From Pelomyxa schiedti (taxonomy: Eukaryota > Protista > Evosea): a stretch of DNA of 64,000 nt. The DNA is taken from contig JAHLWZ010000815.1 in the NCBI GenBank assembly GCA_020536535.1, positions 1 through 64,000 on the forward strand, given 5' to 3'. Numbering within the stretch: the first letter of the stretch is position 1; every line of letters starts with the position of its first letter. Below are positions 3,293-53,200 of the stretch, piece by piece. The notes under the pieces are model-generated. The model did no database searches. It saw only the letters and a program-made list of their open reading frames with translations, and was not told where the DNA came from. A program made the position numbers and the translations under genes.

Positions 3293-5094
3293 ATGAACGA
3301 CATTGCCAATGTGCTTCCCCTAGCTTGTGGTGACACACTTCAGTATTCTTTCGATGAGAGGCAGTTGGCAATCTCCCAGGATTTGTCCCTCATGTATGGT
3401 ACCTCAGCTTTGTCAGATCAACATTGGACTGAGCCACCACTGCCTCAGCAGCGAGGATCAGCTCTGCTGGGGTCACAACAGGCACCACCACCACTGCAGC
3501 AGCAGTTGCAAGTGCTACAACAACAGCAGATCCCGGTCAGACCATTGGTGCAACAGCCTATAGTTCCACAGTCAGGAAGACGCAGGAATGTACAACAAAA
3601 CTCAACACCCACCCTCAGCACATCCACATCAACATCTGCAAGGCCAATTTCACAAGACAGAGCAAGAGTGGGGCCTGCAGATGCCAATCTCCCAGCAAAT
3701 GTGCAGGAGCTAATTACGAGGTAGTTCCATTTCCAATAGATTTGCTAGCTATTACTAAGATGTTCCTTCAGGCATCAACAGCAGGTGAATCGCATCTTGA
3801 GTGCTGCCCCACTTGCCCATACAACAGTTGTTGAGCCAGAAAAAGGACTATGGCCAACTTTTCGTGCTTCTCCTGCAGTTTCGTTTCCCTCTTTGCTTTC
3901 TTCCCGTTTTAATTAAAGCTGCAGGCCTTTTTCGCTATTGTACATTTTGATGTGTTTTGGTTCAACTCCTTCCTGAACGATGTTGTGCCCCGGATTGATT
4001 ATGGCCGCCGTGGTGCAAAGCCACAGATTTCAACAGCCGATGCTGTTTTGCTCTATTTTATGTGTCTATCAAATGGTTCCTCTGTGTACAAAACTGCAGC
4101 TCTCCAGCGGCTCTCTGGGAATCTTGCCCTGAAGGCAATTGAGCGGGTCAGAGAGGATGTAAGGTTGGTTCTGTGGCGGAGGTGGATTGAAAACCCTCCT
4201 ACACATCACCCTGACCCCACTGATCCAACATCCTACATAGCTGCTATTGGGGACCACACACCCATTATTGTGAACAAGCCCTCTGGTTCATGGGCCACAC
4301 AGGCTGAAATGTTTGATGCACATCACGGGTTCCATGCTGCTAAAAAGCATGTTGCTGTGCAGGCCACTCATCCTTACTATGCACGTGGCATTGGGAAGTG
4401 GTGCAAGGGGGCAAGGCATGACTATGCCGATCTTCAGACCTGTTGGGAGTTGTACAAGCCACTGCTGCGGAAAAGCCCTGAGGAACTACAGAGATATCCC
4501 CAGCGACCAACCTGGGCAGCTTTATTTGATTCTGGGTATATTGGCCCAGAACCCAGCGGGTATTTCTTTTCCCAAGTTTGTGTAAGTTAACTTTGACATA
4601 CAGGCTAAATAAAATTGCTATCCCACGAGAGAGTCATGCTGACCCTGATGTAGCTGCCTTGAAAAAGAAGCGGTACTTTTAAAACCAACCATCTCTCTGC
4701 AAACACTCAAACGAGCACAGTGTCGTTGTTGAACAGTTCTTTGGCCGGATGACAGTTTTATGGACCTCCTTGTTGATACCATACCGTTTTACTTTAGATA
4801 CACTGGACACAGATGTGGATGTGATGATACTTCTGACAAATGAGAATATCAAGTTTCCCTTTCTTCCCTTAATACAGTACACTTAATCTCCCAAGACTGG
4901 ACAACATGAATGCTGAAGACCTGAAGAATCACCAGAAGTATCTTGGCTTGTTGGCTGAGAATGCAGCCAAGGCCACAGCAAAAGCTGAGAAGAAGCGTGA
5001 GAAAGCTAAGGCAACCGCAGCAAAAAGGGCACGATTTTCAAAAAATGGTCCTGATGAGCCCACTGAGTCCCACTTCGCTACCTCCACCTCCTGA
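3293..5094 (+). mobile_element. PIF/Harbinger (IS5-like, DDE_Tnp_4-type) transposase gene with 5 introns, apparently intact
   Basis: Splicing introns 3721-3771, 3878-3918, 4560-4603, 4673-4720 and 4853-4895 gives one frame. It has an HTH-like region (DAVLLYFMCLSNGSS), IGDHT (D1), KGARHD, LFDSGYIG (D2), RVVVEQFFGRM (E) and LLTN. Confidence 0.85.
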
Positions 5095-5240
5095 TTCAAC
5101 CATCACCGGTGGCAGCACCCCGCGGGCCATGTTTCTGTTAATGCTGATCTGTTCGAATAGAACACCGTGTTAGAATAAAGAGGAACTTAGAAATTTTCTA
5201 GATCACGAAAGTTTCATCACCCTGTAAATCGGTTTTTGGG

Positions 5241-5326
5241 GAAATAACTCGAGTTATCAGGGGTAAACTCGATGTGGAAAACGAATTCATGCAGAAATAA
5301 CTCGAGTTATCTGGGGAAAACTCGAT
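5241..5326. repeat. Two direct repeats of about 33 nt with a palindromic core ATAACTCGAGTTAT, downstream of the transposase
   Basis: GAAATAACTCGAGTTATC(A/T)GGGG(T/A)AAACTCGAT at 5241 and 5294. Confidence 0.8.
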
Positions 5327-5393
5327 TTATTGGGTCTCCACCGAAGTCGTACCCCAAAAACTAGACTTTGTTCCAATAACAGGCTAACTTCAG

Positions 5394-5831
5394 TCAGTGC
5401 CAATCAGGGACTCGGTTTGGTGGACAGATATTGTAAGCAGATCGCCGAGGATCGAATTGCTGGGAATCGAAGGAAAAAAGATCAAAAAGATAAAGGGTAT
5501 CCAGGCAGGGATGAGTAAGTACCGGGTTATAACCATGCTCGTAAAGTGACGGAAAGCATGGCTCACCAAGCATCTCAACTACAATGGTCTCTATCATCTC
5601 GTCATTCCCCCCCGTGGCATCCCCGGTATCGGTTTCGTTTTCGTTTTCGTTTTCGTCCTCTTCCTCCTCGGCGTAGTCGTAGTCAGACTCGTCCTCTTCG
5701 AAGTTGAAACTGGGGGCGCCGACAACATTGCTTGTTGCATCAGTTGCGTGGGCGGATTCAGTTTGGTTGACTACGTCTCGCTCCGTCAACGAGGAAGCCG
5801 ACTCGGGTGTCGTACATGCACCGTATTCCAT
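5394..5831 (-). CDS. Hypothetical acidic protein (uncertain)
   Basis: 145-aa ORF with an E/D-rich tract and no recognisable domain. A plus-strand intron-like segment at about 5918-5950 makes the strand assignment ambiguous. Confidence 0.3.
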   Translation of the reverse strand: MEYGACTTPESASSLTERDVVNQTESAHATDATSNVVGAPSFNFEEDESDYDYAEEEEDENENENETDTGDATGGNDEMIETIVVEMLGEPCFPSLYEHGYNPVLTHPCLDTLYLFDLFSFDSQQFDPRRSAYNICPPNRVPDWH

Positions 5832-6299
5832 TCAACTGCTTGTTGGATTGGGTTTTGTTGCATTTTGTCTCGTGGTCATCGTCGCTCATATTAAGGTTTT
5901 TTGTGGCATGCTACACGGTAAGTTTTGTTTCTTTTTCTTTTTTGTTACAGGCAACAAATTGCGCCGAAACACAGAAGGCGAGGTGCATGAGATGGGGATC
6001 CTTCCAGCCCACAATGCTGTGTCTCCATTTATTGTAATGGATCAGGACGCGAATGCAACAGATACAAAGCTAGAACCACTCTTCTTGGTGGCAGGACTTT
6101 AGCCACAACCGCAGCCAGAACCCCAACCTGACCTGTGCAACAGTCAACAAGATGAAGGGCACCTCTAAAGCCCCACAGTCATTTCAGCTGCCATAGCCAT
6201 CTGCTTTCTCATATCTTTGATTTTTCTTCGAACCCAACAGAGTGGTTTGAGAAAAATTTTGGTACGTATCAAACAAGATCAACCAAACGACAAACGACC

Positions 6300-9200
6300 A
6301 TGTCCGTTTCTACCAAAGCCAAGTGCGCGTTGTGGGTGCTATCTCTCAAGTGCAAGCTGCCATCGTCCCATAATCTCGCGCAGGGCGCCCTCGCCGCCGG
6401 CTTGTGCACGCAGGCGGCGCTCTGCGCGTCGGCCGTCGTCTACGCCAGCGTCGTCACCAGGCACATCAGCGACGCGTGCGTGTGGTGGGGCGTCTCCGTG
6501 GGCGTAGCCGCCGGCCTTCTCGTGGCCGCCAACTTGGCGCTGAGCGGTGCTGTTTTTGGAGCCTGGAGGCTGGTGTCCAAGCACTCGGTGGCGCCAAAGT
6601 TCGTGCAATTCGGTGTGTGGGTGTTGCACCTCTTGTAATTGTGGGTTTTTTTTGTTGTTGTTGTTATTCCTTTTGACGAGGTTCGTAGAAGACAGGTTGT
6701 CCAGTTTGGAGGACAGAAGTTTGATTGACTCAAAATCAGTGAGTGGCCTTCCTACCTGTTGTTGAGGGGGACTAATCTGGTTCAGCCTTCAAATCTGAAG
6801 TACAAGATATTTATTGGTTGCGGCTCCGCTCTAGTCTTCATCGCATTTGTTATCTCTCTTTTTATCCTTATCGTTGTGGCCATTAATATTCCTGATGATG
6901 GGATCCCAGCACAAATCCCCGGTCTTTACGATGTAAGTTGCGTTCCCACGTATTTTGATTTACAATTGAATTATCAGGAAGTTGATATTACATACGATTC
7001 CAACGGGGTGCCACACATTTATGCCAGGAATTTGCATGATGGTGTCATGTCGATTGCCCTTGTCCATTCGCGAGATAGACTCTGGCAAATGGAGATGAGT
7101 AGGCGAATTGGATTAGGCACTATCAGCGAGATTCTCGGAAATGCGACCCTGGATGATGATATGTGCGTAAGCTCTTACATACTTTCTTTCCCCGTTGACA
7201 CTCAATCTCAGAGCCATGCGCACACTTGGAATTAATCGTGCAGTTAAGAGATCTGTTGCCACCCTGAGCAATGAATCCAGAGCGATATTGCAAGCTTATT
7301 GTGATGGGGTAAATGCGTTCCTGGATACTGACCCTCAGCTCCCTTTGGAATTCACTCTTCTTGGTGTAAAACCACGGCGATGGGAACTTGAAGACACAAT
7401 TTCCTGGCTCAAGGTTTAGTCGACGCCAACAGTAGCCCCAGTGTAACCACTCTCTTTGGGCCAGGTTATAGATCTATACATGGCTCATGATATCAGAAGG
7501 CAAGGAATATTCTGGAACTTTCTTACAAAACAGGGCCTATCATACAGCAGAATAATGGAGCTTTACCCAGCAATCAACAGGTACAATGAATGTTTTTCCT
7601 CCTCAAAACTAAGAAACATTTTTTCTCGCCTCTACAAGGACAGCAACAGCGACTACCCTCTCTCTTGAAGACATGGCCAATGGCCATGGCCCCACAGTTG
7701 GAGAAGTGTGCCCAGCCAGTGAAATTGATCCTCCTGAAATGATTGATTACATAAATAGCTTCATAAAGAAAATGCCCTCACCGTCATCCACTCCCACTGC
7801 AAGTCCAAGTCCCACCTTCCACAATACTTTTTCAGGAGGTGTCGAAGCATCCAACAACTGGGTGGTATGTGCTTGCATATGGCAATGAGCCTCTCAACAC
7901 TAATTAGGTCCATGGTAATATCACAGGGACTGGACCCATTCTGGCTAATGACCCTCATTTACAGTTCAGTTCTCCTGCAATATGGTACCAGGTGCACTTG
8001 GTTGTTGAAGGTCGAACTTGTGAACTCCTGAGAACAAGTTCAAGTAACATTGACTTTCCCTGCAGGACAGTATGATATATATGAGGCTACCTTCCCAGGA
8101 TTCCCACTTGGTCTCATTGGAAAAACTACACTTGGTTCATGGGGTGTTACAAACGGGGGTGTTGATGTGCAGGACTTGTAGGTAGCGCCAATGTGATGTT
8201 TGGCACAATTAATTAATCAAAGCTAACAATCAATTCTACAGGTATGTGATTGATACTGACCAGAACGACCCCAGTCGTTACATATATAATGGGTCAAGTC
8301 TCTCCTTCATTACAGAAACAGAAGAGATACTTGTCAAAGTAGTTGCAGACTTTCTTGTTTGTTACTGATAAAAATTATCAGGACTCCTCTCCGTACATTC
8401 TCAATGTGAGGCTCACTCAAGATGCAATGCCAATTCTCACGGATAACTATATGGACAGCAATGGTGATACGGTTCTTGCACTGAAGTGGGCTACAATAGA
8501 TCCCACCATCATTGACACCACAATGGATGCACTGTCTATGATCAATTTCAACCTGAGTGATTGGGAATCATTCACTGAAGCTGTAAGGTAACTTACCTTT
8601 TCCATCCTACTTTACAATGTTAAATAACCTTTAGCCTACTTATTGGACCGGTCTTGAACCTTGTATTTACGTCCAGTAATGGAGGTATTTATCACGATAT
8701 GCACTTACACTCCCTCACTGATAAATAGATATTGGGTACCGTTTGGGAGGTTTGGTTCCTCAAAGACGAAGTGGATATTCTGGAAAGTTTCCTGTTCCTG
8801 GGAATGGAAGGTGAGACCTCCCTTGTTTGCTTAGACACCAAAAAGAAGCCAGTTATGAGTGGACCGGTTATATACCTTTTGATGAGTTGCCATGGTCACG
8901 GAACCCTCCCAAGGGTTGGCTTGCAACGGCTAACAACATGATCACACCAGTTGGATATGAGAAACCAGGCTGTGTGAGTACATTCTTTGGTTTTCTGGTT
9001 TCCTGACCGCCAGCTTTAGATCCTTCCCGGGTGCTTTGATGTTCACTTCAGAGAACAGCGAATATCAGACTCACTTCGAGACCTTTCGTCGAGGAAGCTG
9101 CGCAACATCACTGCTTTTGATATGCAAAATCTTCAAATGGACTCGGTTTCGATGAGGTTCCAATCCCTCATCCCTGTGCTGCAGCAGCTGCAACTCCACC

Positions 9201-10144: not shown

Positions 10145-11803
10145 ATGAGTTTCCTCTTCAAGAAGAAGCCGGAGGCACCAAAGCCCGTCGGCGTGCTCAC
10201 GATCCTTGTCATCGAGGTGTGCACGTGTTATGAATTATGGGTCTTGTTTGTAGTATCAAATTCACGTATAACGCATGGTTTTGTACCACAGGGCAGAGAC
10301 ATAAAACCAAATACAATAGGTTTTCTTTATGTTTTTTTTAATTAATTTTCAATCATTAAACATCAAGCACACTAGGAGGAAGGGATCCTTATTGTGAAGT
10401 CAGACTGAGGACAAGTGGGCAATTTGCCCCTGTTTTTCTTACTACTGTATGCGCTAAAACTCTTACTCCAAAGTGGAACCAAGAAGTTATTTAGTACGCC
10501 GTTTTATTGCTTCTGTTATTACTTGCCGGTTTCTACCACTACTAACCACGATACAGTCAAATAATGAATCCTAAAACCGACTGTGCTGAGATACGCCTTT
10601 ACGACAAGAACAAATTTCAGGCCAGTGAATTACTTGGGGTCATTGATTTGCCTGTTACGCAGCAGGTAACTTGACACTTTCTGTTGTACATTACATGGTC
10701 TTATTCCACAAAAAAAAACAAAGCTAGGAAAACCTCATCAGGATGGATGGTACATACCAATCTGCTCCCATTGTTTGATGCATAAAACAAAAATAGGTGG
10801 GATTTAATGGACCCAGTCAGAAGGACTCAACCTGCCAAAGGGGCAATCCACCTTGTAGTTATGTACAGTGGAGACCAACAAATTGAGCCACGTAATGATT
10901 TTTTGCCTCTTTCCCGCCTCTCATTCCATTTAAGCATTACCACCTGGTTGGATAACTAAAACTGATCAACACAAACGTGTCTTCTATGTAAACACTCAAA
11001 CAAATGCTACAACTTGGATTCCTCCTGCTGCAGGTGACTCTTCTTAGCGATGTTCTTGATTTATGTCTTTTTAATACCCGTTTAGAACCCCTTGCTACCC
11101 CGTTAGCACAGTCAACAATGCGCCAGTCGGGGCCAGTTCAATCAGGTCCTGCTACGACCAGCCTAGCCACATCAACTACTGTTGTGACAACAACAACAAC
11201 GACACCAACAGCAACGCCTATGATGCCTGAATATCAGTACTCTGTTGTGCCAGCTAGTGCTCCACCAATGGAATATGATCAACCAAATCCACCTCCTCCT
11301 GAAAATCAGATGCAACCTGGATTGTATCCCCAATTTGCGGAAGGTAAGCCCATTGCTTCACCTCGTAATCCTTTTAATCTCTGAACCAGGATACCCACCA
11401 GGCTATCCTCCCGGCTTTCTTCCTCCCGGTTATCCTCCACAAATGATACCGCAGCCACAACAAACAACCAGGCCTACTGCAGCTCCCCCACCCCAAATGG
11501 TACAAGTTCCAATGGGTTCCCAAATGCCGCCACAGCCACAGCAGCAACCACAACCGATTGGTACGTATGACATGAGAGGATTCCTTGAGAGTAATGGATT
11601 ATCTCACTTAGTTGTATGTATCTCTCACTTTTGGAAGAATTCTCATCTTCCAATAGGCACTGTTCGAGAAAGAACGAATTGACATGGAAGTTCTTGTTGC
11701 AATGAGCGCGGATGAACTCAGGCAACTGGGAGTGGAATCATTTGGGGACAGGAAAAAAATCGAGCTTGCTCTCTCCCGCCTGAAGTCTTCGTCTTCATTC
11801 TGA
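10145..11803 (+). CDS. C2 + WW + Pro-rich + SAM domain protein
   Basis: C2: VLTILVIE...DPYCEV...PKWNQ...YDKNKFQASELLG. WW: LPPGWITKTDQHKRVFYVNTQTNATTWIPP. SAM: FLESNGLSHL...FEKERID...LRQLGVESFGDRKKI. Confidence 0.85.
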
Positions 11804-12029
11804 TGAGAACCCTTGTGTTGAGGCTTTCTTTGTATTTGTGGGGAAAAAAAAAAAACAAAAATTACACAAAGACCTAAACACACTTAACACCGCCGATCCT
11901 GGCTTTGTACACAGACTTGTATCAATTATAAAAATGTGGCGCAACCTCACCACATAGTGTGTACTGTGGAACGAAGAGGGAAAAACAAGAGTAAGAAAGA
12001 ACAAACACCTTTCTTGTTCATTCTCTTTC

Positions 12030-12711
12030 TTACAGCTTGATTGCGAACTTGCGTGTGGGGTAGGCGGAGAGCTTCTTCTTCTCCTTGAGTGTCTTTTTGG
12101 CAAGTTGCTTTGGTGTGAGCTCGCGGCGCTTGGCTCGGGTCAATTTGGGCCTAAGGTCCAGAGGCTTGTACTTGTGTGTGCTGTAGTACTTCCTCAAGTG
12201 TGCCTTTTGTGTTTGGTTGATGACTGTCAGAACACGGGCAATAGACTTGCGGACAGTCTTTCTGTAAAAGGTTATGTGAGAATGTTGCTCGGTAGTAAAA
12301 AGGATGTATTTGGCGGGTGTTAGAGGCTGCAACAGTTACAGCGGTTTTTTGTGGTTAGTGTGAAGTGTGCGTTTTCTACACACATTTTAGCGAGCTTTGA
12401 GGGAGCACCACCAGTAACTTGGGCTACCCTGAGTTGACCCAACTCTGTCTTAAGCTCTTCAAGCTGCTTAAGCAAGTCGGTCTTCGACTTTTTTCTCAGT
12501 TCGTATGCCTTGACCTTGACTGCAGTAGGAGGCGAATTAATAAAGACAACAAAAAAGCGACACGAAACAAAAAAAAAAAACAACGCAAAGAACGCGAAAC
12601 GTTGTGTAACAACACCTCGCACATAACACCCACCAAGCCAACAAAAAAAACAAGAACAACGACAACAAAAAAATCGTGAGAATGGAGTGGCATGGTGGAT
12701 GCCGTACCCAT
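12030..12711 (-). CDS. RPL35: 60S ribosomal protein L35 (uL29)
   Basis: Spliced product [28 protein letters not shown]...[16 protein letters not shown]...[16 protein letters not shown]; two introns. Confidence 0.97.
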
Positions 12712-12960
12712 TTCGAACTGTGCGAGACTACACAAAGGGACTTGGTTGACCCTGGGGCTGCTGTAGGGGAAAACAAAAAAAAATCTTTTTGATCTCGGCG
12801 TCCCAAAGACGAAAATTAATTGCTTCTCATACCAATTGCACATGACAGTTACGTCAGTGCTATCGTTCTATTCTATCGTTAGAACCCGGTGATTTAGCAT
12901 AAAACAACTTCAAGGTTTGTGGTAAAGGGGAAAAAAAGTGGAGCTAGTTGAGACAGAATT

Positions 12961-15900
12961 CTATTTACACAGGAAGTTTAACCCACAGGAGGTCCACAGG
13001 TCACGTACCTCTGCCGTGTTGTCTCCCTCGCTTACAAGGAAGTTTGACATGCTCAAGTGTGCCTCATTCCACATTTCCACAAGAACATCTTGGCCCTGTG
13101 ATTAAGTGAGTTATTGAGATAGACTGCGCGGTAACTGACCTTCTCCCTGAGAATAGCACACAGTGCTACAGAGGCAATAAAGCCTGGATGAAGCGATTTT
13201 GTTGGTGTTGAGAGCAACTGTGAACACTGAAGGGAGACTTCCACAATGAAGAGAAAAGGGATGCATTGCTGCGAAGCAAGCCAGCCAACAATACTTAGCA
13301 CTTTGCGCCATGCATTTGGGTTGTCTAGTTCCAAATCCGGAAGATTTTTTACGGTTTCCTGTAGCCTGTTTGGAGTTGTGAACATTTTTTTCCCCCTGGT
13401 CTTGGTGTTGTTTACGCTGTGTTAAAGTGCTCAGTACAAAGAATATTAGCTCTATAAAGGGAATCTAACAGCCGGCATATTGTGGCTTGGTCCTTTTCCT
13501 TTCTCTGCAATATAAATACAACACTTTGAGAGATAATCTTTTACAAGACAAAATTGTTAACTCCATCAATTTGGGAAACAAAAAGATAAAATTACCTGTG
13601 ATTGGGATTCCGTGCCTAATTCTTTTACACACTCTATGGCATTGTCCAGATCCAAGGAAACGAGATATTCTTGGAGGAGCATGTCAATGCGGTCTAAGAT
13701 ATCTACTGATTGTTTTTCTGTGGAATTCGTAGCATTTGGAACACTGCTAGAACTTGCAGTGAGAGCCAATACAGAGGGCGGGTGCTGCTCTTGATGCTCT
13801 TGAACTTGTTGTACAACTGGTGAATCGAGGGCGACGTCTGAGTCACCGTGGTATTCCTCTATATGCAATAGTTGGTAATGGGATCATAACCCCAATGGGA
13901 ATACCATCGCCGTCCAGTTCAAGAAGTGAAGGCATGGCTGACTCGGGTACAGTACCCACTGAAAGAGGGGAGATTGTGGGAAATGGTGCATGCACAAAAT
14001 CTGGGTTTCCAGGTGGAGACACTGATGTTGGAGCCCAATCACCACACGAAGATACCCGCCGATGTGAGCGAACGTAGGGTGCAGAGTTGGTAGAAGCCCA
14101 GCCTGATTTCAGGTTTTAGGTAAGAACAAAGACGTTGAGGAACAAACTTGGAACAGGTGGTGCGGTTGGAGCTGTCGTAGTAACAATAGAGCGTCTTTCT
14201 ACATATAGATAAGGAAGGGGAAAAAAGGAGTATTGAACAACTGTTTGGTGAAGGAGAAGCCCGTGAAGGGAAACGGTTTCTCAGTTGAGTTAGTTTTTCC
14301 TCATCTTCAGCCTTCAGAGATGCGATTATTCAACTAGAGTTTTCCACAAGATATTACACACAGATTTATTCCGAACTCCAGGTTTTAAACTTTCTATTGA
14401 TCTGGGTTTCCATGAATTGGCTCGTAGATCAGATAGATCCTAGAAAAAGGTAAACACAAAACCCAACAACTCGAAAGAAGGCACAAGCATCATGAACTTT
14501 ATTCGAGGAGTTAAGGATTCATCAGTCTGAAGTCTTTTTATTTGACTGAAGATATCCTGAATCATCTTTAGGAACTACAAAAAAGCTAGAGTTTTTTGAT
14601 ACATCCAGTAAAGGGTGTCCGTCAGGTGACTCTAGTTGACCACTAGCAGTAACAATGAGTTTGTGAAGTAGTTCAAGTTCAAACTAGAAAATTAAGTTAT
14701 TTCAAGATGTGAAACTTCGTGCATACTTCGGGATTTTCAGATTTGGGAAAGAAATCCAGGAATTTCTTAGCACAACCAAGAACGATAAACTTGGGTAAAA
14801 GGTCAACTTTGAAAAGCTCTCCAATAAAAAGAGCAGCTGTGCAGAAGATGAGATTTGCAGTTCCGAACCACTGAACATACTTCCAAGTACTCGTTTCTTC
14901 TTCCTATCGGCATATTCTTCATCATCTCTTGAATCAGGGCGAACAAAAATCTCCGTGTTGCATCGATTTAACAGTAATCTTCTAAAAGTCTTTGTAATTC
15001 CCAAGGTTAGGCGGAAATTCTATCAAATAAATCAACCTGTCTGGTTCCATTCTCGATGAAGGAGGGGTATATAAGGGCCAACTCGCGAGCCAATATGGCG
15101 TACATTGGTGTGAATTTCACTTCATTGACAGCTTTATTGAAAATCATTAAAACTGCACCATCAAGGATCTGATGTAATAGGGTTAATCAGCTTCCATACA
15201 AAGTTACATGGAAAAACAACCTCATAGGAAGGGACATTAATTGCCATGATTTCCACTAGAAGAATGTCGAAATTCTCCAGAGTGAGCTTATTTAAAATTC
15301 TACCAACATCAGTTGAAAATGGATGAAGTCATCTCCATACCCAGTAATCTTGTTTAAAGTTGTACGATTTGCTTGTGTGGAATTAGTAGGCTCAGTAGGA
15401 CGGGTCCAAATGTCCTGACGTGTCTGCAAGACCCATTTTAAATACAATAGACCGAAGAAAATGGAAAAGACCTGATCATTATGCCGGTTCCTTGCCCCAT
15501 CCCAACTTGAATGTTTCCAATCCCTTGAACGTTCATTTTCACGCTACTTGGTTCAGTTTACTTTAAGGGAAAGCTTTTTACCTGTTCGTAGATGCCCTGA
15601 TGATCACCAGAAAAAAAAAGTTTCTCGATTGTTACAGTCAGGCCTGCAGGTTTATTGGTGTAAGTCTGAAAAGGTGTTAGTTATCATCATAAGTAAGAAA
15701 GGAAATGACCCACAGGTTTGAAGGACATCAGAAAGTCTAAAGAGTAACTTCGTTTGTTTGAATCTTGACTCTCATCCACACCCTAGAATGGTGAGAACAA
15801 CTTACACTGCATAAATAATCTAACTACATGCTCTTCCAGTGGGGCAGTCTGTGGTTGTGAGTAAGAGTAAGGAATAAGACTTCCATTCAACTTGAACACA

Positions 15901-43171: not shown

Positions 43172-44993
43172 ATGCAGCACGGATTCAAGAAGCCAAGGAG
43201 GGCCACGTCGGGCGGTGGATCCGGATCTACGTACTCTAGTCACGATGGCGTTGTTATGGGGCCTGCTGTCGCACTTCCCAATGTCGCTGTTACGGCCGCC
43301 TCTGCCAACGGCGTATCGTCTAGTGGCGGCGGCGCTTTTTTGTCTACGCAGACCGCTGCCTCGTCTTCTCCGTCGACTCGCCCATCATCTCCGTCGTTGC
43401 CGGGGATGCTTCCTCCGCCTTCCCCGTCACTTTCTCCTTCTTTGTCTTCGTCGCTGCAACAGCAACAAACTCAGCAGCAACAGCAGGCACAGCAATCAAC
43501 GCCAACGGCTACCCAATCCAGTGCAAGCACGATCGGTGTTGTTGTCACGTCTGCCAATGCGAACGACCCATTCATATTTACGAGAGAGGAAGTGAAGCGG
43601 CGCTGTGACGTTAGGGAGATATACGAGATTTGTGAAACTCTGGGCTATGGTTCGTCAGGAAAAGTTGTACGGGCAATTCACCGCAAAACCAGAAACGAGT
43701 ACGCAGTGAAAATCATCAAAAAGGGAGATTTGTTACCTGTGAACTCCCCGAACATCTCTGCGAGGAGAAGGGCAAGATTAAGGTCTGAGTTTGAAGTGAT
43801 GTCTGAGTGCCGACACAGAAACATTGCTTCACTGGTGGAAGTGATAGAAAGTGAGAAAGAAATATGCTTTGTACAGCAGCTTATGAGAGGTGGAGAGTTA
43901 CTGGGGAGATTACTGGAGAAAAAGAGATTTTCTGAGGAGGAGACACGCAGAGTTATGCGCAGCGTTCTTTCTGCACTCCAGTACATGCACAAGAAGGGAG
44001 TTGTCCATAGAGACCTCAAACTTGGTATACATTTTACTCTTTCTCTTTATTGTTCTTACGAGGACAAAAGAGAATGTGGTTTACGAAAGTAATCAGGCAG
44101 ATTCTCGCATTTGCGTTGTCGATCTGGGACTTGCCCGATTCACTGACACTGACGAGCACCTTCACACACCGTGCGGCTCTTCACCTTATGTATCACCAGT
44201 ATGTAAACTCTACATAAATTAACTTTGCTTACATCCTCATAGGAGCTTGCTGGTCTAGTTTTGAGTAACAATGCTACTCAGTATTATCAACGAGGATTAC
44301 CTCTGAACAACAACCAGTACTATCAAAAGGGGGTAGACATGTGGTCGTGTGGAGGTTTGTTTTTTTCCCTCTCCGTACTCCACTAAAACATTAACAGTGA
44401 TCATGTACACTTTGTTGGCTGGATATCCACCCTTCCAAGCAGATAAAAATGATGAACTTCTTGAGCAAGTAGGTTTTACTCCTTGTTACGCCGAGACTAA
44501 ATTTCAATATTTCAAGATAATGGAAGGATTTTTCTACTTCCACGAGAATCCATGGAGTTCCATCTCCCGTGAAGCAAGAGAACTAATTCTCCACATGCTC
44601 GAGAAAGATGCCTCAAGGCGGTTTACAGCGGACGAGGCACTCAAACACCCATGGATGCGCACGCACCAAAACACTGCCGTTACACCTATAGTTACAGCAC
44701 CTCCTTCTTCTTGTACGTCAACTACACAACAAGAAAACACGGAGACTGGCACACTGTCATCAAGCCTTGGTGACGAACAAGACCAAGCAAGCTCGGAATT
44801 AGGCTCCAAATCCGAAATTTGGGACCCAGAAAAACTCAGACACCAGCTCAACCTATCCATTCAACTTCAAAGAGACCGCATGGAATCGTTAAAGTCACCC
44901 TCTGAATCCACCATTGCTCTGAGGAGGAAAGCCAAAAAAGCAGCTGTTGCAAACACCAAAGACAAGGACGACCCTCCAGGCTCCACAGAGTAA
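43172..44993 (+). CDS. CAMK-group Ser/Thr protein kinase
   Basis: LGYGSSGKV, AVKII, GGELL, VHRDLK, DLGLAR, TPCGSSPYVSPE, DMWSCG, LAGYPPF and RFTADEALKHPW. Confidence 0.95.
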
Positions 44994-45546: not shown

Positions 45547-48500
45547 ATGGGAAAGAAGAAAGGACAAGTCGCCAAGGTAGCGCTCCTCGTCGACGACGTA
45601 TCCACCACCACCACCCCTTCCACAGCCACGTCGGCGTCGCCTGTCCCTCCGGGCGGCAGCACCCCCGGGGGTGTACCCGTGGGGCTCTCGCCCCAGGCCG
45701 CCCAGACCCTCCGCATGCTGCGGGAGTGCCCCAAGGCCGAGTGCGTGGCCATCGTGCTCCTTTCTAGCTGCCTGCCTCCCCTCGCACCTACATCCACTCC
45801 CACTCCCACTCCCACCCCGTCGCCTTCGTCGTCGTCGTCGTCGTCGTCGTCAACAACAACGGCCACATGCAGGCCACACTCGCCCACGCCAGCTTCCACG
45901 TCGGCACCCTCCTCCTCGCCCACGCCCACGGGCAGCCCTGCTAGCGGGACCACGAGTGGGAGGCCGGGAGTGGGTGTGGGAGTCGCCGCCGCCCCTTCTT
46001 CTTCACTGTCCAAGGAATCGTCCCCGTCTCCTTCACCCTCTGTGCTTCCTTCTAGTCCCGCTGTTGCATTATCACCATCACCACTACCACCATCGTCGTC
46101 ATCACTGGCCTCCACCACACCAAGTACTGCTGCTACTGCTGCTGCTTCTACCACAACAGTAGCACCTGCAACTACTTCACCACTGGCTTCTTCTACCACA
46201 ACACATGGTCCTGCTACTCCCACTACCAGTACTACTCCCGCCTCTACTACTGGCACTGGTTCGACTACTAAATCTGACCCACCTCGCGTGTTTATTTCTT
46301 GGGCTGAATTCGAGGTTGGTTGTCAGGGTTTTTTTTTTTTTTTTTTGATTTTCTTTTCATTGTAGGCTTCATTTAGTGCACGAGGAGCCACCTCTATAGA
46401 TGCAGTATGGATATGCACAGAGGCTATATCCACCCGTGGAGTAATTGCTCAAAGTGCTGCTGATGTGTCAAGGGTTGTCTACTGTCCAGCTCCGCTTGCT
46501 TTGAATGAAGCAGATATAAAGATTGCTTATGAGGTACTGTTACAGTTCCTATTTCCGAAAAACTTACCTTCTTCTCTTAGGTTTGCGCATCGAAGGGAGC
46601 GGAGTTAGTTGTTGGGTGGCCAAGGCGTTTTGATTCTGGGTAAACTTTTTTCTCTTGCCAAACTGGTTAATGTCTTCCAGCTTTATGTCTCTTTTCGAAG
46701 AACTGGCTGGAGCCAATATCGCCTCCGCGCATTTTGTTAACAAACTCTGGCCATTGCCTCAAACGAAGCTCGCCTCTCTTCCGTCAATATTCATGGTTTC
46801 TTTTCTTACGTGGAAGGTAATTAAACTCACACTCTCAGGAACTAATGAGTCATGACTTCAACCTCTCAAGCTTTTTCATGAACGAGCAGATGCCCTTAAC
46901 AGTGGCTGCTTCTGGTTTGTGCCCTTGTCTATATTGACTATCTGACCTCCCTTTCAGGGCGCGATACATATGGAACTGGTGTTTGGGATAGTGCTACGTG
47001 CACAGTAGAATACTCAGCTGGTAGAACAGTTGTAATTGAAGTATGTCCTAACACCCCCGCCTTCTTTCGTGATGAGCTGTTCCAACAACAAATAGGTGTC
47101 AAGATTTGGCGATGGTAAAGTGGAGAACTCGGTTACGCTGGTGGCCAATGGCCGAACAAAAGAAAGGGGCAAAGATACCTTTGCCATTAATTTATTACAG
47201 AGGTATTTTTCGGTCTTCTTTCAGGGTTTCTGATAGTTATAGATATGAGTCATCTCTCCAGGCCCAAGTCGAGTACCTCTCTCGTGTGTGTTTAGGTGAG
47301 AAAGTGTGGCAGCTGTGTTCCAAGGATTTTTGTGTTGCTACAACTCAACTTGCATTACTGGCTGAGCAAAGTGCTCGGGAGGGAAGGAAATTATCTGTGG
47401 CTTCTGGCCCTGCAGTGAACTTATTACAAGTTGGTGAAGGTATTTTCTCCTCTCTCCTTGATAAGATCTCCAATAACAACCACAACAGATCCCTTCATCC
47501 AGAACAAAATCCTCACACAATTGCCTTGCTGTAAATCAGCATACACTTTCACTGGCCTAGCCGCAACGGCTTCAACTGACGATGCATCCTATCAAAAGTT
47601 TGAAGAGTTCATGACTTCCTGTGAAGCGAATGCCGCATATATTTGCCTCGATCACAAACACAGCTCCTATGTTGCAGAGCGCTGTTTGAGAGCAAACATG
47701 AGAGTCATTGTAGACCATCCAGTACAGGACTTCAATAGCGTCATGCAAGCCTCCAAATCTAAAGACAAGTTACTCATGATTCGATTCTTTTGCAGGTGGA
47801 GTATGCAATGTCTTGTTGAATGTGTAATAACCGAAATAATGGTTATAGGTATGATAAGAAGTTCCAGAAGGCACGAGATTTGGTGGCACACCTTGCTTCT
47901 GAAGGAAGTTTATCAACTGTAACCATTGAGACAACAGATCCACTGCCTCCCTGCAATGATACTATTGAAACCATTCTCACCAGTGGTGCTGATGACTTTG
48001 ACATAGTGGCTTGGATGTTTGATACTGTGGATTGTGATATCTCACAGAAGTATATGCGGATCATTGGAGCCCCATCGTCGTATGTGGCCTGCTTCAGTGT
48101 GCGATTACGAAAATATGATAAAGTAATCGAGGCGAGTTTGCAGTACACGAGAGGTGGTGGTGTCCACTCTCGCATAGTACGTGTAAACTCTGTGGAGTTT
48201 ATACGCAGAAGTGAAATGAGTCTCACTTTATCCCCACGTGACCTAATTCTGAGTGCATATGTTGATGCCATTGCAAAACAATTTAGGTCATTTTCCACGA
48301 AAATCCTTCCCCCATCTCAAAATGGCTCCTACTGCACCACCTACATGCGGACCCATCAAATTCTTTATAATGCCTGCGAGTCGATTGTTGACGAAGCTGT
48401 TGATACAGACTCACTTTTGTCTTCTTCACCTCCTTCATTAGCATCATATCCTCTTGCCCTTAGAAACAGAAGTCGAAGCACAGGCACTGCATCCCTGATA

Positions 48501-50117
48501 CCAACTGTACCTCTCGCTAACTCAATCGCGATTTCCTCCAAGCCACCACCTTCTGTATCCCCAGAACCAGTGTTACCTCGCACATCAGTTTCATCAACTG
48601 CCGTTACTCAACCTGTCACATTCACTCGTGGTGGCTTGGTGTACAAACCCTTAGTGACAAACGAAGCCGTCGAATGGCGGGCCTACACACAAGTGAGAGA
48701 AACTATTCCTGCATTATGCCAGTGGATGCCTACCTTTAAGGAAAAGGCTTTGCTCAACGGCGTGACATACCTTGTTACCGATGACATTTCACAAGAGTAT
48801 AAACGGCCTCGGATACTGACAATCAAAGTTGGTGAACCTAGCGACTTCCAACGCATGCACAACCAACCTTATGGATTGAAGGTTTGATTACAAAGTCAGG
48901 CACAATCTCATTTCGTTTTAGGTTTGCGGCTATACAGGAGACAGCCATAAAAATATTCACAGATCAAATTTATCTTGGAACGACCTATCTGCCATGTTGA
49001 AAGATTTCATCAAAGACAAGGAGAGCGGCAATCTGCGGTATGAGGTTATACCAATTTGGCTACAACAACTCCGCCAATTGCTGGAATTAGTTGGATCCCA
49101 GACTCAGTTCATCTTCAGAGCCGCGGTATTCAAGTTGATGTATGACGGGGTTGATGATTCCATGAAAACACCTCTGGTGAAGTTGTACGATATCTCGAGG
49201 GCGAAGGAAAGCGGAGGTGAAACTGATCACTGTCTATGCATGGGCCTCGAAAACCTGTCTCAGTTGTTGCAAGAATTGCACACCAAGTTTATAAACAGGC
49301 ACGCGGTGTTCTTATGCAGACATGGATTCTGCATTGAGCCTAGTGATAGACAGTGGCACTCCAAGTACCCAATGGACCCTCCCTTGTCAAGCCAAGGTGT
49401 ACAACAGGCTCATGAACTTGCCCAACGACTTAAACATGAGAACATATCCATTGTAATTTCGTCCCCCTTTGCTCGAGCCAAACAGACAGCCGAGGTACAT
49501 AAAAAAAAAACCCAACAACCCCTTAATGAAATAAGCCTCGAGTGACTAATGCCCAAAAAAAGATAATAGCGGAAGAATTAAACATCAAGTACATGCTGGA
49601 ACCCGTTCTTGGAGAAGTAGCCCTAGATACCGGCTACGGCAGTTCAGCCCGGCTCAGTGACGCCCTCGATCCAACACTCCCTCAGAAAGATGAATTCCTA
49701 CTAGAATCCCTCGTCCCATCATCACCCCCCTCCTCCCCTTCCCTATTCCCTCATACACCCGCACCAACACCAACGGCATCATCATCACCGCCACAAACGG
49801 CATCACCTCCCACAGTCCGGTCACTGCAGATTCTGCAGAACCGGATGCACAAGTCACTGGAGGCCATATGCCAACAGTACAAGAGGGTTGCCATTGTGGG
49901 ACACCGGGCCACTTTCGAGGCACTCCTGGCCACCATCTGCAGTGCTCCGGACAACAACAAGTTCAGCAGCCACCAGAGGTCATTCGAATTCGCGTCAGTC
50001 AGCACACTGCTCCCAACTACAAGTTCAACGACTGGATGGGCAATAGACAGGCTGAATATGCCCTCCCACTCTGCCTCTGTTCCTTCCCCTACTCAAAATA
50101 CCACCACAAAGAGCTAA
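45547..50117 (+). CDS. Multidomain protein: two Gfo/Idh/MocA (inositol-dehydrogenase-like) domains, an inositol polyphosphate kinase-like domain and a histidine phosphatase
   Basis: Gfo 1: DAVWICT...CPAPLA...VGWPRRFD...SHDF...AEQSAREGR. Gfo 2: AAYIC...VDHPV...FFCRYDKKF...TTDP...DDFD. IPK-like: YKPL..E...MPTF...YLVTDD...PRILTIKVG...KVCG...MYD...KLYD...GLENL. Phosphatase: RHG...DPPLS...SSPFARAKQTA...VGH. Confidence 0.82.
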
Positions 50118-50241
50118 TTCATTCCATCAAATTACATGTGCGAGAAAATTAAAAACCGAAATATAATTTACATTTTGTTTGTTTCTGGGTGATCTTTCTT
50201 GGTAGTGATAGGGTATGTGGTGAGGTATATTAGTGCGGTGG

Positions 50242-53200
50242 TTATGACCAGACTACTATGGAATGAGTTGAGAAAATAGCCCATAGAACAGTGAGGAGGA
50301 GTCCACTGCCGCCGTCAGAAACGATGCCAATGCTGTTGACACCGGCTCTGTTTGGTTTGGTGAGGCCTGATTGAGGTTCATCTGCTCGGTTTGTATTTGT
50401 TGCCGAGGTAGGAGGATTTGCGGTTGTATTGCGTTCTCTCAGAGTGTCAACTAGTGTGCCGGTGCCAGCTTCCCACACACATACAGCCCCATCATCATGG
50501 CCGGTCACAACGAAGTTACTGTATGATATTATGGTGGTTGTGTGGGGGTGCTGTGCCACACTGGGGCACTGTGTGATAACTGAGCCGGAGGAACTAAGGC
50601 AGAGAAGCACCCCGTCTTGGGAAACCCATATGCCGCTGCTGGAGCTGCACATGGCAGTGACAGGAATGCGGGATGGTAAGCTGTGTGTAACCTTGTACTC
50701 AAAGTTCTCCACCCCATAAACGAGAATATCACCATGGCTGGTGCCCAGCCATACTAGGGTTCTGTTGGTCTGGAGACCACACTGCACAATGACACCGTCA
50801 AGTGTGTGTACAGTATACTGCGGATTTTCTTGTGATTCTGCTGGGAGAATTACCAGCTGAGAAGAGGCGAACGAGACGTTGATCCCAAAGGCCCAAACGG
50901 TAGCCAGTCCATTGTCGTGTAAAGTTACGGGAAACAATACAGAGACGTTCAAGTGTGTTACATCATGTTCCCTAATCTATGAACCAGTAAGATTTCTCCA
51001 GTTGGAAGGACGTACTTGAGTATACAGAAGAGCTGAGGGATCAATGCAACAGATTGTCCCGTTATTCAAACTACAGAAAACTTTTCCTCCCGCTGGTATA
51101 ATCTGCAATGCTTTGGCAGGTAGAATAATCCGTGACTCTGTGGGTTCACAAGTATTTGTAGTGTAGATTAAAATTGCACGTTTGACGACAACCCAAACGT
51201 GTTTTTGAACAACACAAATCAGTCTGGGATTCTGTGGTACGGGTGTGAATTGTGATTTGAGTATCATTGAGGAACCTTGATTTCTGGGGGCATGGGTACT
51301 TGTGTTGGAGTGAAGTTTTGGAATGGTGATTGACCTTCTTTGAACCTTTTACGCATAAGTCCCTCTGGAGTATTTCAAATGAAAATTGATTCATTTTAGT
51401 GACACTGAGGGTTTAAGGGCAGGAGAAGATTGTACTTGATGGAACAGAGTTTCTATGACTTTGGACAAGTTCTTGTGACAACTTCACAAGTTGCATGTAT
51501 TCTTTGTAAAGACCAGCAGTTTGCTCAGGGGTTATTGTAGAGATATCAATGTTCGTGTAGCAAAGGTTGTTCAACAATTCCTTTCGGACATTTAGAAAGT
51601 TCAAAACCACAGTAGCTGAATCGTACAGAGAGAGATTGTGATGCATCTCCAGCCCGAAGATCACAGAGTCCTCCAGGTAAGTCTGAACTGTTGGAAGGAG
51701 AAAGAATAAGAGCACTATAGTACAAATATGAATTCCTACATGTCTTTGGTAGAATTGGATGTTGGGGGCTGTACTGACAACTCAGTTGAAGATGGAGCTT
51801 CTCTTCAAAAGGTTACCAACTATAAGAGAAAAAGAAGGAGGCTTAGGGCAGGAGAAAATACTTGAGGGGTGTGGAGGGGGTCGCAGGTTCTTTGCGTTTC
51901 TTGGATGACTTTGAATCTGCATTGCTAAAAAAAAAACAGTTATCACAAAGGGAGACGTTCATCTGAACCTGAGAATTGACGATTCTGCACATTTGGTGAC
52001 TTCTTCAACTGTAAGAGTCTCAATGAAGGTTGTTGCTGAAATGAGATGTGTAAAATAACAGTAAGCTTCCCCAAATCTTTCTTCTGGGTCAATAAATCGA
52101 GATATGTAGCTGAGTGAACAGGTGAGGCAACAATGCAGCTGTGGGAATACCATACGATAAATTGGAGTGCATGTGCGGCAATTTTGATCGTATCACTAAA
52201 TATATTAGAAGGGGCAAGAAGTCATCGGCGCCTGCGCTGCTGCCTTCTCCTTGGAGCATATCTTGTGCTCACTTACTTTTGTTTGAATAAGAGAAGGGCT
52301 GGTACATGTGAGTACAATGCAAGCATTCAAAATGCAGGTAAGTTTCTCCCAAGGAGACTGAAATTCATCGATGGCTACCAAGCCTATCACACTTTCAACG
52401 GCGAACAGGTAAGGAGGGGGAACAGTACCATCCTGGGCATGCTGCAAAATATCTTCATCAGAAATAGTCACACGAAGTTCCAGATGATGTGGCTTTATAT
52501 GAGGGAAAAGACTCACAGTATGTTTCCAAAATGCAGTGTCTTTCTCTTGGAGATGCTTCTTGAGGTACAATCTTATAGGTGGATTACAATTCCGTGATAT
52601 TCTTAAAGATATCTTACTTGGAGAATAAGTTTTCAAATACATATTTATGCATGCTGTTTTTGGCATTTCCGAACGCATCTTCTGACATTTTGGGCCAAGG
52701 TCCCATGTGATGCATGGTACTTTCAGCATCCAGCAAAAAGTTCATAACTACTGTAGCCTCCCCATCCATTGACATTCCACGTACTTGCTTATCAAACCCA
52801 CGGAAAAACCTTAATATTTAATTTAAAAGGGACAATCGGACAATTCAAACAAACTCTTCAAAGGCCTTTTTCACCTGAGAGCATTCTGGTGAGTACAAGT
52901 GTTTTAAAAAGGTACGATACGGATCTGCTGCAGGGTCAGCTTTGATTTTAACCTGCTAGTTTTTGAGTTTGTTACTATGGGTTTTTTGTGGAGTTACCAC
53001 CGGAACAGTGGGCATTGGTGGGGCTTTGGGGCGGACTTGCTGCATTCAAAGTAAGTAGAATAGGGATGTAAGCACTTGCACAAACATGCTTTGCAAAAAA
53101 TCCATCGACATCGTCATCGTCATCATCAAAGAGTTTGTCTTTCGGTGGTGGTGACACAGACGTAGTCAATTTATTGTATGATGTTACAGCTCCTTCGTCT

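Follow-up and report, generated by a model that had tools for sequence, protein, structure and literature searches.

What does a protein do when three of its four enzyme-like domains seem to have lost their catalytic residues? The question is raised by a gene at positions 45547 to 50117 (+) of a 64,000-nucleotide stretch of contig JAHLWZ010000815.1 from the archamoeba Pelomyxa schiedti, referred to here as the window. A preliminary description of the window, made from its letters, proposed that one spliced frame encodes two domains resembling Gfo/Idh/MocA dehydrogenases (such as the myo-inositol dehydrogenase IolG), an IPK-like inositol phosphate kinase domain, and a histidine phosphatase, and that the first three are dead enzymes regulating the fourth. 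We find that the window gene belongs to a family of kinase-phosphatase fusions and is probably a phosphatase-specialized paralog of a bifunctional kinase/phosphatase.

A single spliced transcript encodes the whole protein

The exons of the window gene total 4041 nt and form a single open frame of 1346 amino acids (aa). The spliced product is letter-for-letter identical to the P. schiedti protein KAH3756802.1 of GenBank (hereafter P0001), whose database name is “phosphoglycerate mutase” and nothing more. This protein was recovered by searching a representative protein library with exon 11 (100% match over aa 972-1162). All whole-protein analyses were run on the database entry, and exons were joined in scripts solely for three checks, on the frame, on identity to P0001, and on the effects of single-nucleotide polymorphisms (SNPs). 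Several searches with other single exons were uninformative: Pfam gave nothing useful for exons 2 to 8 (19 to 65 aa), and sequence searches of the Protein Data Bank (PDB) with exon 10 or 12 alone returned chance matches (a cytidylyltransferase, PPR proteins, and low-complexity sequences).

Four public runs of one sample cover 45547-50117. Three of them provide unspliced, genome-like contigs and the fourth (X4) spliced ones. An X4 contig of 3248 nt maps to 46394-50120 and skips ten pieces of 40 to 68 nt, all with GT..AG borders. A second X4 contig of 346 nt (depth 2.3) matches 46017-46312 (296 letters), and the depth-2.3 contig also covers 46407, 7 letters from its end. The eleventh joint, between exons 1 and 2 (a skip of 46315-46365), is inferred because the reach of the 346-nt contig to 46407 fits only that skip; it has no row of its own among the listed joints because the poly-T tract at 46320-46362 in intron 1 was masked. 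The gene is expressed as a 12-exon transcript, and the proposal of one spliced frame and one mRNA was borne out.

The phosphatase domain is complete, and two of three kinase motifs are gone

The C-terminal domain of P0001 matches His_Phos_1 (PF00300) with 86.9 bits. Its catalytic residues were assigned by alignment, via the family member P0005, to UBASH3A/Sts-2, Huf, and TFC7. The set is complete, in agreement with the preliminary description: the RHG motif (49318-49326), the Arg of SSPFAR, the Glu of LEP, and His 1276 (49902-49904, within GHR) are all present. With a hidden Markov model (HMM) match and the Arg-His-Gly motif, second Arg, Glu, and second His all in place, the domain is predicted to be active. 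A Ser/Pro-rich insert of 62 aa (aa 1201-1262; 49677-49862) occupies its variable cap region. By sequence, the solved structures nearest to the phosphatases of the family are UBASH3A/Sts-2, Huf, TFC7, and phosphoserine phosphatase 1 (5wdi, 2yn2, 2yn0), and a Foldseek search with the P0001 phosphatase model returned RosC and Huf. The name “phosphoglycerate mutase” (dPGM) was rejected, as the best NCBIfam scores are 50 to 57 bits against cut-offs of 163 to 261, and the matches below cut-off are scattered over ribazole phosphatase, GpmB, and PspA.

The domain that precedes the phosphatase has the IPK fold. PF03770 matches aa 965-1088 with 34.1 bits (cut-off 22.2), and the predicted structure finds human IPMK first in Foldseek (5w2g; E value, 1e-12; template modeling [TM] score, 0.74), followed by EhIP6KA (4o4b), IP3K, yeast Ipk2, and a giant-virus inositol phosphate (InsP) kinase, as expected from the proposed IPK assignment. 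The AlphaFold2 model of aa 870-1346, which covers both the IPK domain and the phosphatase, has a predicted local distance difference test (pLDDT) score of 75 and a predicted TM score (pTM) of 0.74, with pLDDT values of 80 to 95 over most of the IPK domain. Only four residues, and no linker, separate the last IPK helix from the first phosphatase strand, and the junction contains several invariant residues.

Three signature motifs of IPKs, as well as kinase-independent roles of these proteins, have been described (PMC11237472). Two of the three motifs are gone in P0001. The PxxxDxKxG motif reads PRILTIKVG (48807-48833), in which the Asp has become Thr and the Lys is kept, so that the Asp-Lys pair is broken. 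The SLL motif is lost, with AAVF at 49120-49131 (A-V-F-K where relatives have [A/V]-S-L-L). The metal-binding Asp of the IDF motif is kept in YDISR (49186-49200), which corresponds in alignments to (I/V)D(F/L/M) in relatives and in EhIP6KA. In the N lobe, the Lys is kept in YKP, and AGHGG has become FTRGG. Thus, the three motif readings given in the preliminary description were found at these positions, and its view that the domain lacks key residues holds for the Asp of DxK and for SLL, but not for the Lys of DxK, the Asp of IDF, or the N-lobe Lys. Judging from these residues, the kinase appears impaired, yet not stripped of all catalytic residues. Replacing both the Asp and the Lys of PxxxDxKxG with Ala yields a kinase-dead IP3-4 kinase, a double mutant that does not cover a change of the Asp alone (PMC11237472).

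The window gene belongs to a family with alternating motif losses

In the representative library, exon 11 matched 17 proteins at E values of <= 1e-10. The same four-domain layout is found in Mastigamoeba balamuthi (P0003, 1268 aa) and in the metagenome proteins P0007, P0008, and P0013, which answers the earlier suggestion to look for homologs of the same architecture. P0014 aligns end to end with the four-domain family, Pfam detecting its IPK domain alone, and the P0008 gene adjoins a Sec24 gene on an intron-poor contig. Shorter forms with IPK and His_Phos_1 domains occur in Entamoeba histolytica, E. nuttalli, and E. dispar (693 aa), in E. invadens (450 aa), in Hemimastix (559 aa), and in several metagenome proteins. 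In the Entamoeba protein, the sequence begins at the EKP site of the second Gfo-like domain (where it reads QVP), and the NAD-binding half is missing. The Mastigamoeba protein keeps both Gly loops, the EKP and His of domain 2, all three IPK motifs, and the RHG...H of the phosphatase. A fusion of IPK, branch-1 phosphatase, and IolG-like domains is new with respect to the literature searched and misnamed in GenBank: of the publications found on IPKs in combination with either a histidine phosphatase or a phosphoglycerate mutase, for Entamoeba or for Pelomyxa, none describes this architecture. The best match in a feature search of the ESM Atlas was a bacterial cluster with APH and His_Phos_1 domains, at 0.79, which is under the meaningful level. 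A weaker match of another kind, P0016 (ENA, 1161 aa), combines a class I tRNA-synthetase N-terminal region with four His_Phos_1 repeats (417 bits).

A search of the organism's own genome revealed a second P. schiedti copy (loci L013 and L019), a multi-exon gene on the minus strand of contig C828 at ~11440-15217. Its exons read SEKP (domain 2), PRVLDLKVG, AASLLFVY, LIDLGR, RHGFRVDY, SSPFTR, VVEP, and VSHR, all of them intact motifs, and it is closest to the metagenome protein P0004. An ortholog of the window gene is carried by the 80-kb metagenome contig L017 (ENA ERZ21831265, ctg79331l), on which the last 703 aa had been called as a gene (P0002). By tblastn, ~4599-8103 of this contig encodes the full ortholog, 39% identical over aa 312-1333, from a Pelomyxa-like eukaryote. 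The L017 ortholog has the same kinase changes as P0001 (Asp to Ser, SLL to LVK, and TRGG for AGHGG), and its dehydrogenase-like domains read EAP in domain 1 and retain EKP and G-x-G in domain 2. Since both proteins carry the kinase changes, the kinase motifs were therefore lost before the two lines split. The motifs of dehydrogenase-like domain 2 disappeared later, in the P. schiedti line.

In a maximum-likelihood tree of the IPK-phosphatase half (16 sequences; the C828 gene was left out), P0001 and P0002 (support, 100/99) are sister to the Mastigamoeba group, with which they form clade A (96/97). Clade B (P0004, P0006, and P0010), the Entamoeba pair, and a Hemimastix-type outgroup stand apart from it. 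The state of the two catalytic sets alternates within the family. Kinase motifs are incomplete and phosphatase motifs complete in P0001, P0002, P0004, P0006, and P0009; the kinase motifs are complete and the phosphatase catalytic His is lost in P0013, P0014, and P0015. Both sets are complete in P0003, P0005, P0020, P0055, and the C828 paralog, and both are incomplete in P0010. As for the Asp of PxxxDxKxG, it is kept in P0003, P0005, P0007, P0008, P0013, P0014, and the C828 paralog and gone in several clade-B members.

The domains of P0001 are unequally conserved. Identity to the Mastigamoeba protein amounts to 47% in the IPK domain, 45 to 48% in the phosphatase, 39 to 43% in dehydrogenase-like domain 1, 24 to 33% in domain 2, and 12% in the linker. 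When columns conserved in >=75% of the other 14 family members are considered for the IPK-phosphatase half, P0001 keeps 42 of 48. The six departures include the Ser and Leu of SLL, positions at which P0002 departs as well. Four of the six SNPs between single-cell runs are synonymous, and the sole indel, present in one run, is an in-frame CCA insertion at 45601, a length polymorphism of the Thr-rich insert in exon 1.

Two IolG-like domains have lost their cofactor loops

Both N-terminal domains have the two-lobe fold and an HMM match to the IolG type. Pfam detects GFO_IDH_MocA_C3 (PF22725; aa 368-436, 28.0 bits, cut-off 27) in IolG-like domain 1 (aa 245-514) and GFO_IDH_MocA (PF01408; aa 553-623, 35.7 bits, cut-off 24) in IolG-like domain 2 (aa 513-820). 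The IolG model TIGR04380 is by far the top NCBIfam model for both, with 64.4 bits for domain 1 (E value, 8e-18; model positions 63-327 of 330) and 36.6 bits for domain 2 (E value, 2e-9), scores far under the equivalog cut-off of 355. In an AlphaFold2 model of aa 245-880 (pLDDT 74), the part corresponding to aa 245-514 was superimposed by VIA-align on the Thermotoga myo-inositol dehydrogenase 3ezy (Z 27.1; root mean square deviation, 2.6; 262 residues) and on 4hkt (Z 26.6), and model residues 269-576, which make up IolG-like domain 2, on 3m2t (Z 23.2). The better-preserved domains of the orthologs have their best PDB match in the inositol 2-dehydrogenase 4hkt (E values, 4e-13 and 9e-14). Next come 5a02, 3db2, and 3ezy in the case of domain 1 and 3ezy in that of domain 2. 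The four-domain layout first proposed is therefore supported alike by Pfam, by NCBIfam, by AlphaFold2 models searched with Foldseek, and by VIA-align, and its inositol theme is upheld by TIGR04380 and by the closest structures, the inositol dehydrogenases 4hkt, 3ezy, and 3euw. The three outcomes named in advance as contradicting the preliminary description (separate transcripts, no IPK fold, and grouping with non-inositol dehydrogenases) did not arise.

Neither domain of P0001 has a GxGxxG/A loop for NAD(P). In domain 1, the first strand (KVALLV) runs into a 27-aa Ser/Thr/Pro insert in place of the Gly loop. According to BLASTP, aa 45-70 align to the Gly loop, helix, and strand of P0008 (17-42; E value, 2e-4), the loop there reading G-L-S-P-Q-A; orthologs read LVGAGRLG or LVGAGRMG at this position. 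The alignment suggests that the Rossmann loop is either replaced or preceded by the ~27-aa insert, which refines the earlier claim of a motif split by Ser/Thr/Pro inserts; the absence of GxGxxG and the presence of the inserts stand. In domain 2, the Gly loop has become VGEDP, with a deletion. The EKP motif reads PAP (46486-46494) in domain 1 and DHP (47713-47721) in domain 2, exactly as claimed. Its catalytic Lys is missing from domain 1 of every family member; that of domain 2 is present in Mastigamoeba, in the L017 ortholog, and in the C828 paralog and missing in P0001. At the D-x-x-x-H site, domain 1 retains Glu (aa 370) and His (aa 374) within FMELMSHDF, which was aligned via P0008 to FRDMTIHDF of 4hkt, and in domain 2 an Asp (aa 676) takes the place of the catalytic His.

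A phosphatase-specialized paralog is the favored explanation

Several findings go beyond the preliminary description: the membership in a family, the C828 copy with intact motifs, the age of the kinase-motif loss in a still conserved domain, the alternating losses, and the catalytic residues that the kinase has kept. Because the alternating losses of kinase and phosphatase motifs resemble those of bifunctional enzymes after duplication, we read the window gene as the phosphatase-specialized paralog. In the family layout, an IolG-like tandem precedes an IPK domain and a branch-1 histidine phosphatase of the Sts/TFC7 type. The ancestor would have been a bifunctional kinase/phosphatase, and P0001 would be a clade-A member left with phosphatase activity alone after subfunctionalization. 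We infer from the sequences that its substrate is probably an inositol (pyro)phosphate, that the dead kinase domain may have been kept as a rigidly joined partner, for substrate binding or for structure, and that the pseudo-dehydrogenase tandem may act as a scaffold or oligomerization module.

Several points weigh against phosphatase specialization. The assignment of activities and substrates within the family is motif-based, and the A/B duplication is resolved on just 16 sequences. P0001 has a Cys where clade B has the second Arg of its RHGxR signature, and a 62-aa low-complexity insert lies within the phosphatase. Erosion of the phosphatase pocket is general in clade A, where P0008 has RHA and P0013 to P0015 have RD. 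The retained Lys of DxK, Asp of IDF, and N-lobe Lys could allow residual or altered kinase activity. The evidence for expression comes from spliced contigs of one small run, X4, which is not recorded as RNA and whose contig depth is no gauge of expression level.

Ligand sensing by the dead domains is possible. In the sensor-phosphatase of the preliminary description, the dead IolG-like and IPK domains would bind inositol, NAD(H), or inositol phosphates and gate the phosphatase allosterically. Much of this interpretation held: one protein, an inositol theme, an IPK fold, motif losses in three domains, and a retained phosphatase. Its regulatory core is a rather unlikely second choice. The dead IPK domain equals the phosphatase in conservation, its catalytic loss is ancient and common to the L017 ortholog, the linker-free junction carries invariant residues, the two-domain model has a pTM of 0.74, IolG-like domain 1 retains Glu and His at the IolG substrate site, and noncatalytic roles of IPKs are known (PMC11237472), all of which would suit a sensor. 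However, the destruction of both NAD loops makes sensing of NAD(H) unlikely in P0001, and IolG-like domain 2 is the least conserved of the domains. The alternating losses fit subfunctionalization at least as well, and a pattern in which kinase-dead and phosphatase-dead members alternate is simpler under it.

The kinase of P0001 might also be alive, with a noncanonical IPK activity, perhaps on another substrate, supported by Lys 953, Asp 1061, and Lys 893, so that the protein would still be bifunctional. Three retained ATP- or metal-contacting residues, the confidently predicted fold, and the high conservation of the domain speak for this. Nevertheless, we judge it improbable, as the PxxxDxKxG Asp is Thr, SLL has become Val-Phe-Lys, and AGHGG is FTRGG; the published Asp/Lys double mutant, for what it says of a single change, is kinase-dead; and the intact C828 paralog could supply the kinase activity.

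About as doubtful is a more ambitious proposal, in which the dead IPK and IolG-like domains are true sensors (of inositol [pyro]phosphate and of inositol or inosose, respectively) that gate the phosphatase, and the family is the missing enzymatic and regulatory machinery of the unusual inositol phosphate chemistry in Archamoebae, including the neo-inositol polyphosphates of Entamoeba. Neo-inositol polyphosphates have been reported from Mastigamoeba (Phreatamoeba). In E. histolytica they predominate among the inositol phosphates, and an epimerase for phosphorylated inositols is not known (PMC4063336, PMC5984642). We considered whether the family could be this epimerase, a candidacy weakened by the missing NAD-binding half of the Entamoeba protein and by the loss of the domain-1 EKP Lys in all members. 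A connection of the family with neo-inositol chemistry is thus appealing as a lead but weak, given the absence of that half in Entamoeba.

That the gene is a redundant duplicate decaying under relaxed selection, with no function left in any domain, is very unlikely: motif losses in three domains, long low-complexity inserts in two, and a terminal branch of 0.54 for P0001 compared to 0.27 for Mastigamoeba would fit decay, but the frame of 1346 codons is intact across 11 introns that are removed in transcript contigs, the kinase is in the same state in a relative of only 39% identity, and the mostly synonymous SNPs, the in-frame indel, the 42 of 48 columns kept, and the conserved IPK domain show that the dead kinase domain is still constrained and that the gene is therefore not a decaying pseudogene.

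Comparison with known enzymes

PFK-2/FBPase-2 (PFKFB) is a fusion of a kinase with a His_Phos_1 phosphatase, and yeast has the phosphatase-only Fbp26 and the kinase-only Pfk26 and Pfk27. As in the window protein, a single chain carries the kinase first and a branch-1 histidine phosphatase behind it; the PDB chains 1bif and 3bif gave weak matches across the exon with the IPK-phosphatase junction. By analogy, PFKFB isoenzymes that lost one activity may parallel the alternating motif losses. The PFKFB kinase, however, has the P-loop nucleotide-kinase fold and acts on fructose 6-phosphate, whereas the fold found here is that of IPKs (protein-kinase-like), and PFKFB has no dehydrogenase-like domains.

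PPIP5K/Vip1 likewise joins an inositol pyrophosphate kinase to a histidine phosphatase, which takes the same phosphate off again, a “futile pair” acting on an inositol messenger (PMC11836120, PMC8024741). Its kinase is of the ATP-grasp type and its phosphatase belongs to branch 2 (His_Phos_2), in contrast to the IPK and branch-1 domains of the window protein, and a Pfam scan of P0001 for the PF18086 region and PF00328 gave no match to either. Two PPIP5K genes (PPIP5K2_N and His_Phos_2) are present in Pelomyxa, at ~16-19 kb of C907 and ~11-14 kb of C947, which rules out the window protein as a replacement for PPIP5K in that organism. A search of the Pelomyxa genome for IP5 2-kinase (PF06090) gave no match and was uninformative, as the controls were likewise silent. 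In E. histolytica, a survey listed four IPKs, no IP5 2-kinase, and no PPIP5K, and mentioned no fusion (PMC8024741).

The IPK domain matches IP6K and IPMK enzymes in fold and sequence family (EhIP6KA, 4o4b-f; IPMK, 5w2g; Terrestrivirus, 8t8v). Unlike these, the window copy has lost the Asp of PxxxDxKxG and SLL and is embedded in a four-domain protein. Elsewhere in the Pelomyxa genome, contig C1050 holds two IPK copies with identical scores, at 11450-12178 (-) and 12854-13582 (+), lying head-to-head ~700 bases apart; they reflect either an inverted duplication of recent date or a palindrome created in assembly.

IolG-type myo-inositol 2-dehydrogenases are the best-scoring Gfo/Idh/MocA subfamily for both IolG-like domains, which have full two-lobe folds. 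They differ from the window domains in keeping GxGxxG and the EKP Lys, and the 64 and 37 bits obtained here stand against an equivalog cut-off of 355. Archamoebae possess a genuine peroxisomal myo-inositol 2-dehydrogenase, in reports that do not mention the window protein family (PMC8629394, PMC8887013). Targeting to the peroxisome as for that enzyme was rejected for P0001, which ends in ...TKS: a C terminus resembling the type 1 peroxisomal targeting signal (PTS1) was sought and none is evident.

As for the phosphatase, its closest solved relatives form the clade of Sts/UBASH3, TFC7/Huf, and ecdysteroid-phosphate phosphatases, whose RHGxRxD signature is present in clade B. In the window copy, by contrast, Cys replaces the second Arg. 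Substrates in this group range from phosphotyrosine to steroid phosphates, so that no substrate can be predicted from the relationship.

Features of the window gene and its neighbors

The coordinates of the gene, its exons, and its domains are collected in Table 1.

Table 1. Window gene of P. schiedti: coding region, domains, inserts, and exons
Feature	Position	Strand	Evidence
Whole coding region (12 exons, 1346 codons plus stop)	45547..50117	+	Spliced-contig joints, frame check, identity to KAH3756802.1
Exon 1 remnants of first Rossmann strand, helix, and strand (aa 1-17, 45-72)	45547..46314	+	BLASTP
Ser/Thr/Pro-rich insert 1 (aa 18-44)	45598-45678	+	
Ser/Thr/Pro-rich insert 2, 178 aa, after strand 2 (aa 73-250)	45763-46296	+	
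Rest of IolG-like domain 1 (aa 257-512), exons 2-8	46366..47402	+	TIGR04380, PF22725, VIA-align
IolG-like domain 2 (aa 513-820), end of exon 8, exon 9, start of exon 10	47403..48428	+	PF01408, TIGR04380, VIA-align
IPK-fold domain (aa 881-1095), end of exon 10, intron, start of exon 11	48609..49293	+	PF03770, Foldseek, motif table
His_Phos_1 domain (aa 1096-1346), end of exon 11, exon 12	49294..50114	+	PF00300, alignment, motif table
Exon 1	45547-46314	+	
Exon 2	46366-46533	+	
Exon 3	46581-46639	+	
Exon 4	46681-46795	+	
Exon 5	46839-46914	+	
Exon 6	46958-47040	+	
Exon 7	47096-47202	+	
Exon 8	47243-47439	+	
Exon 9	47489-47795	+	
Exon 10	47849-48881	+	
Exon 11	48922-49494	+	
Exon 12	49563-50117	+	

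The neighbors are separate genes. Upstream, on the same strand, 44349-44993 (+) codes for the C terminus of a protein kinase (Pkinase, 44 bits). Downstream, 50242-51267 (-) is a convergent WD/beta-propeller-like gene whose frame ends at 50242. The 3′ space common to it and the window gene measures at most ~125 bases (50117-50242), and the spliced X4 contig stops at 50120, 3 bases past the stop codon.

Implications for the family

The window gene itself is a degenerate paralog, mainly useful as a natural dissection of its family. Fusions of a kinase with a phosphatase, of which PFK-2/FBPase-2 and PPIP5K are the examples, are a classic means of controlling the level of a signaling metabolite. 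An IPK-fold kinase joined to a branch-1 histidine phosphatase behind inositol-dehydrogenase-like domains constitutes a third, unreported fusion design, and the group in which it is found counts the human parasite E. histolytica among its members. The finding also corrects the database name “phosphoglycerate mutase.” With one copy whose motifs are intact and another in which those of the phosphatase alone are complete, the Pelomyxa genome offers a natural experiment in which the roles of the individual domains are testable.

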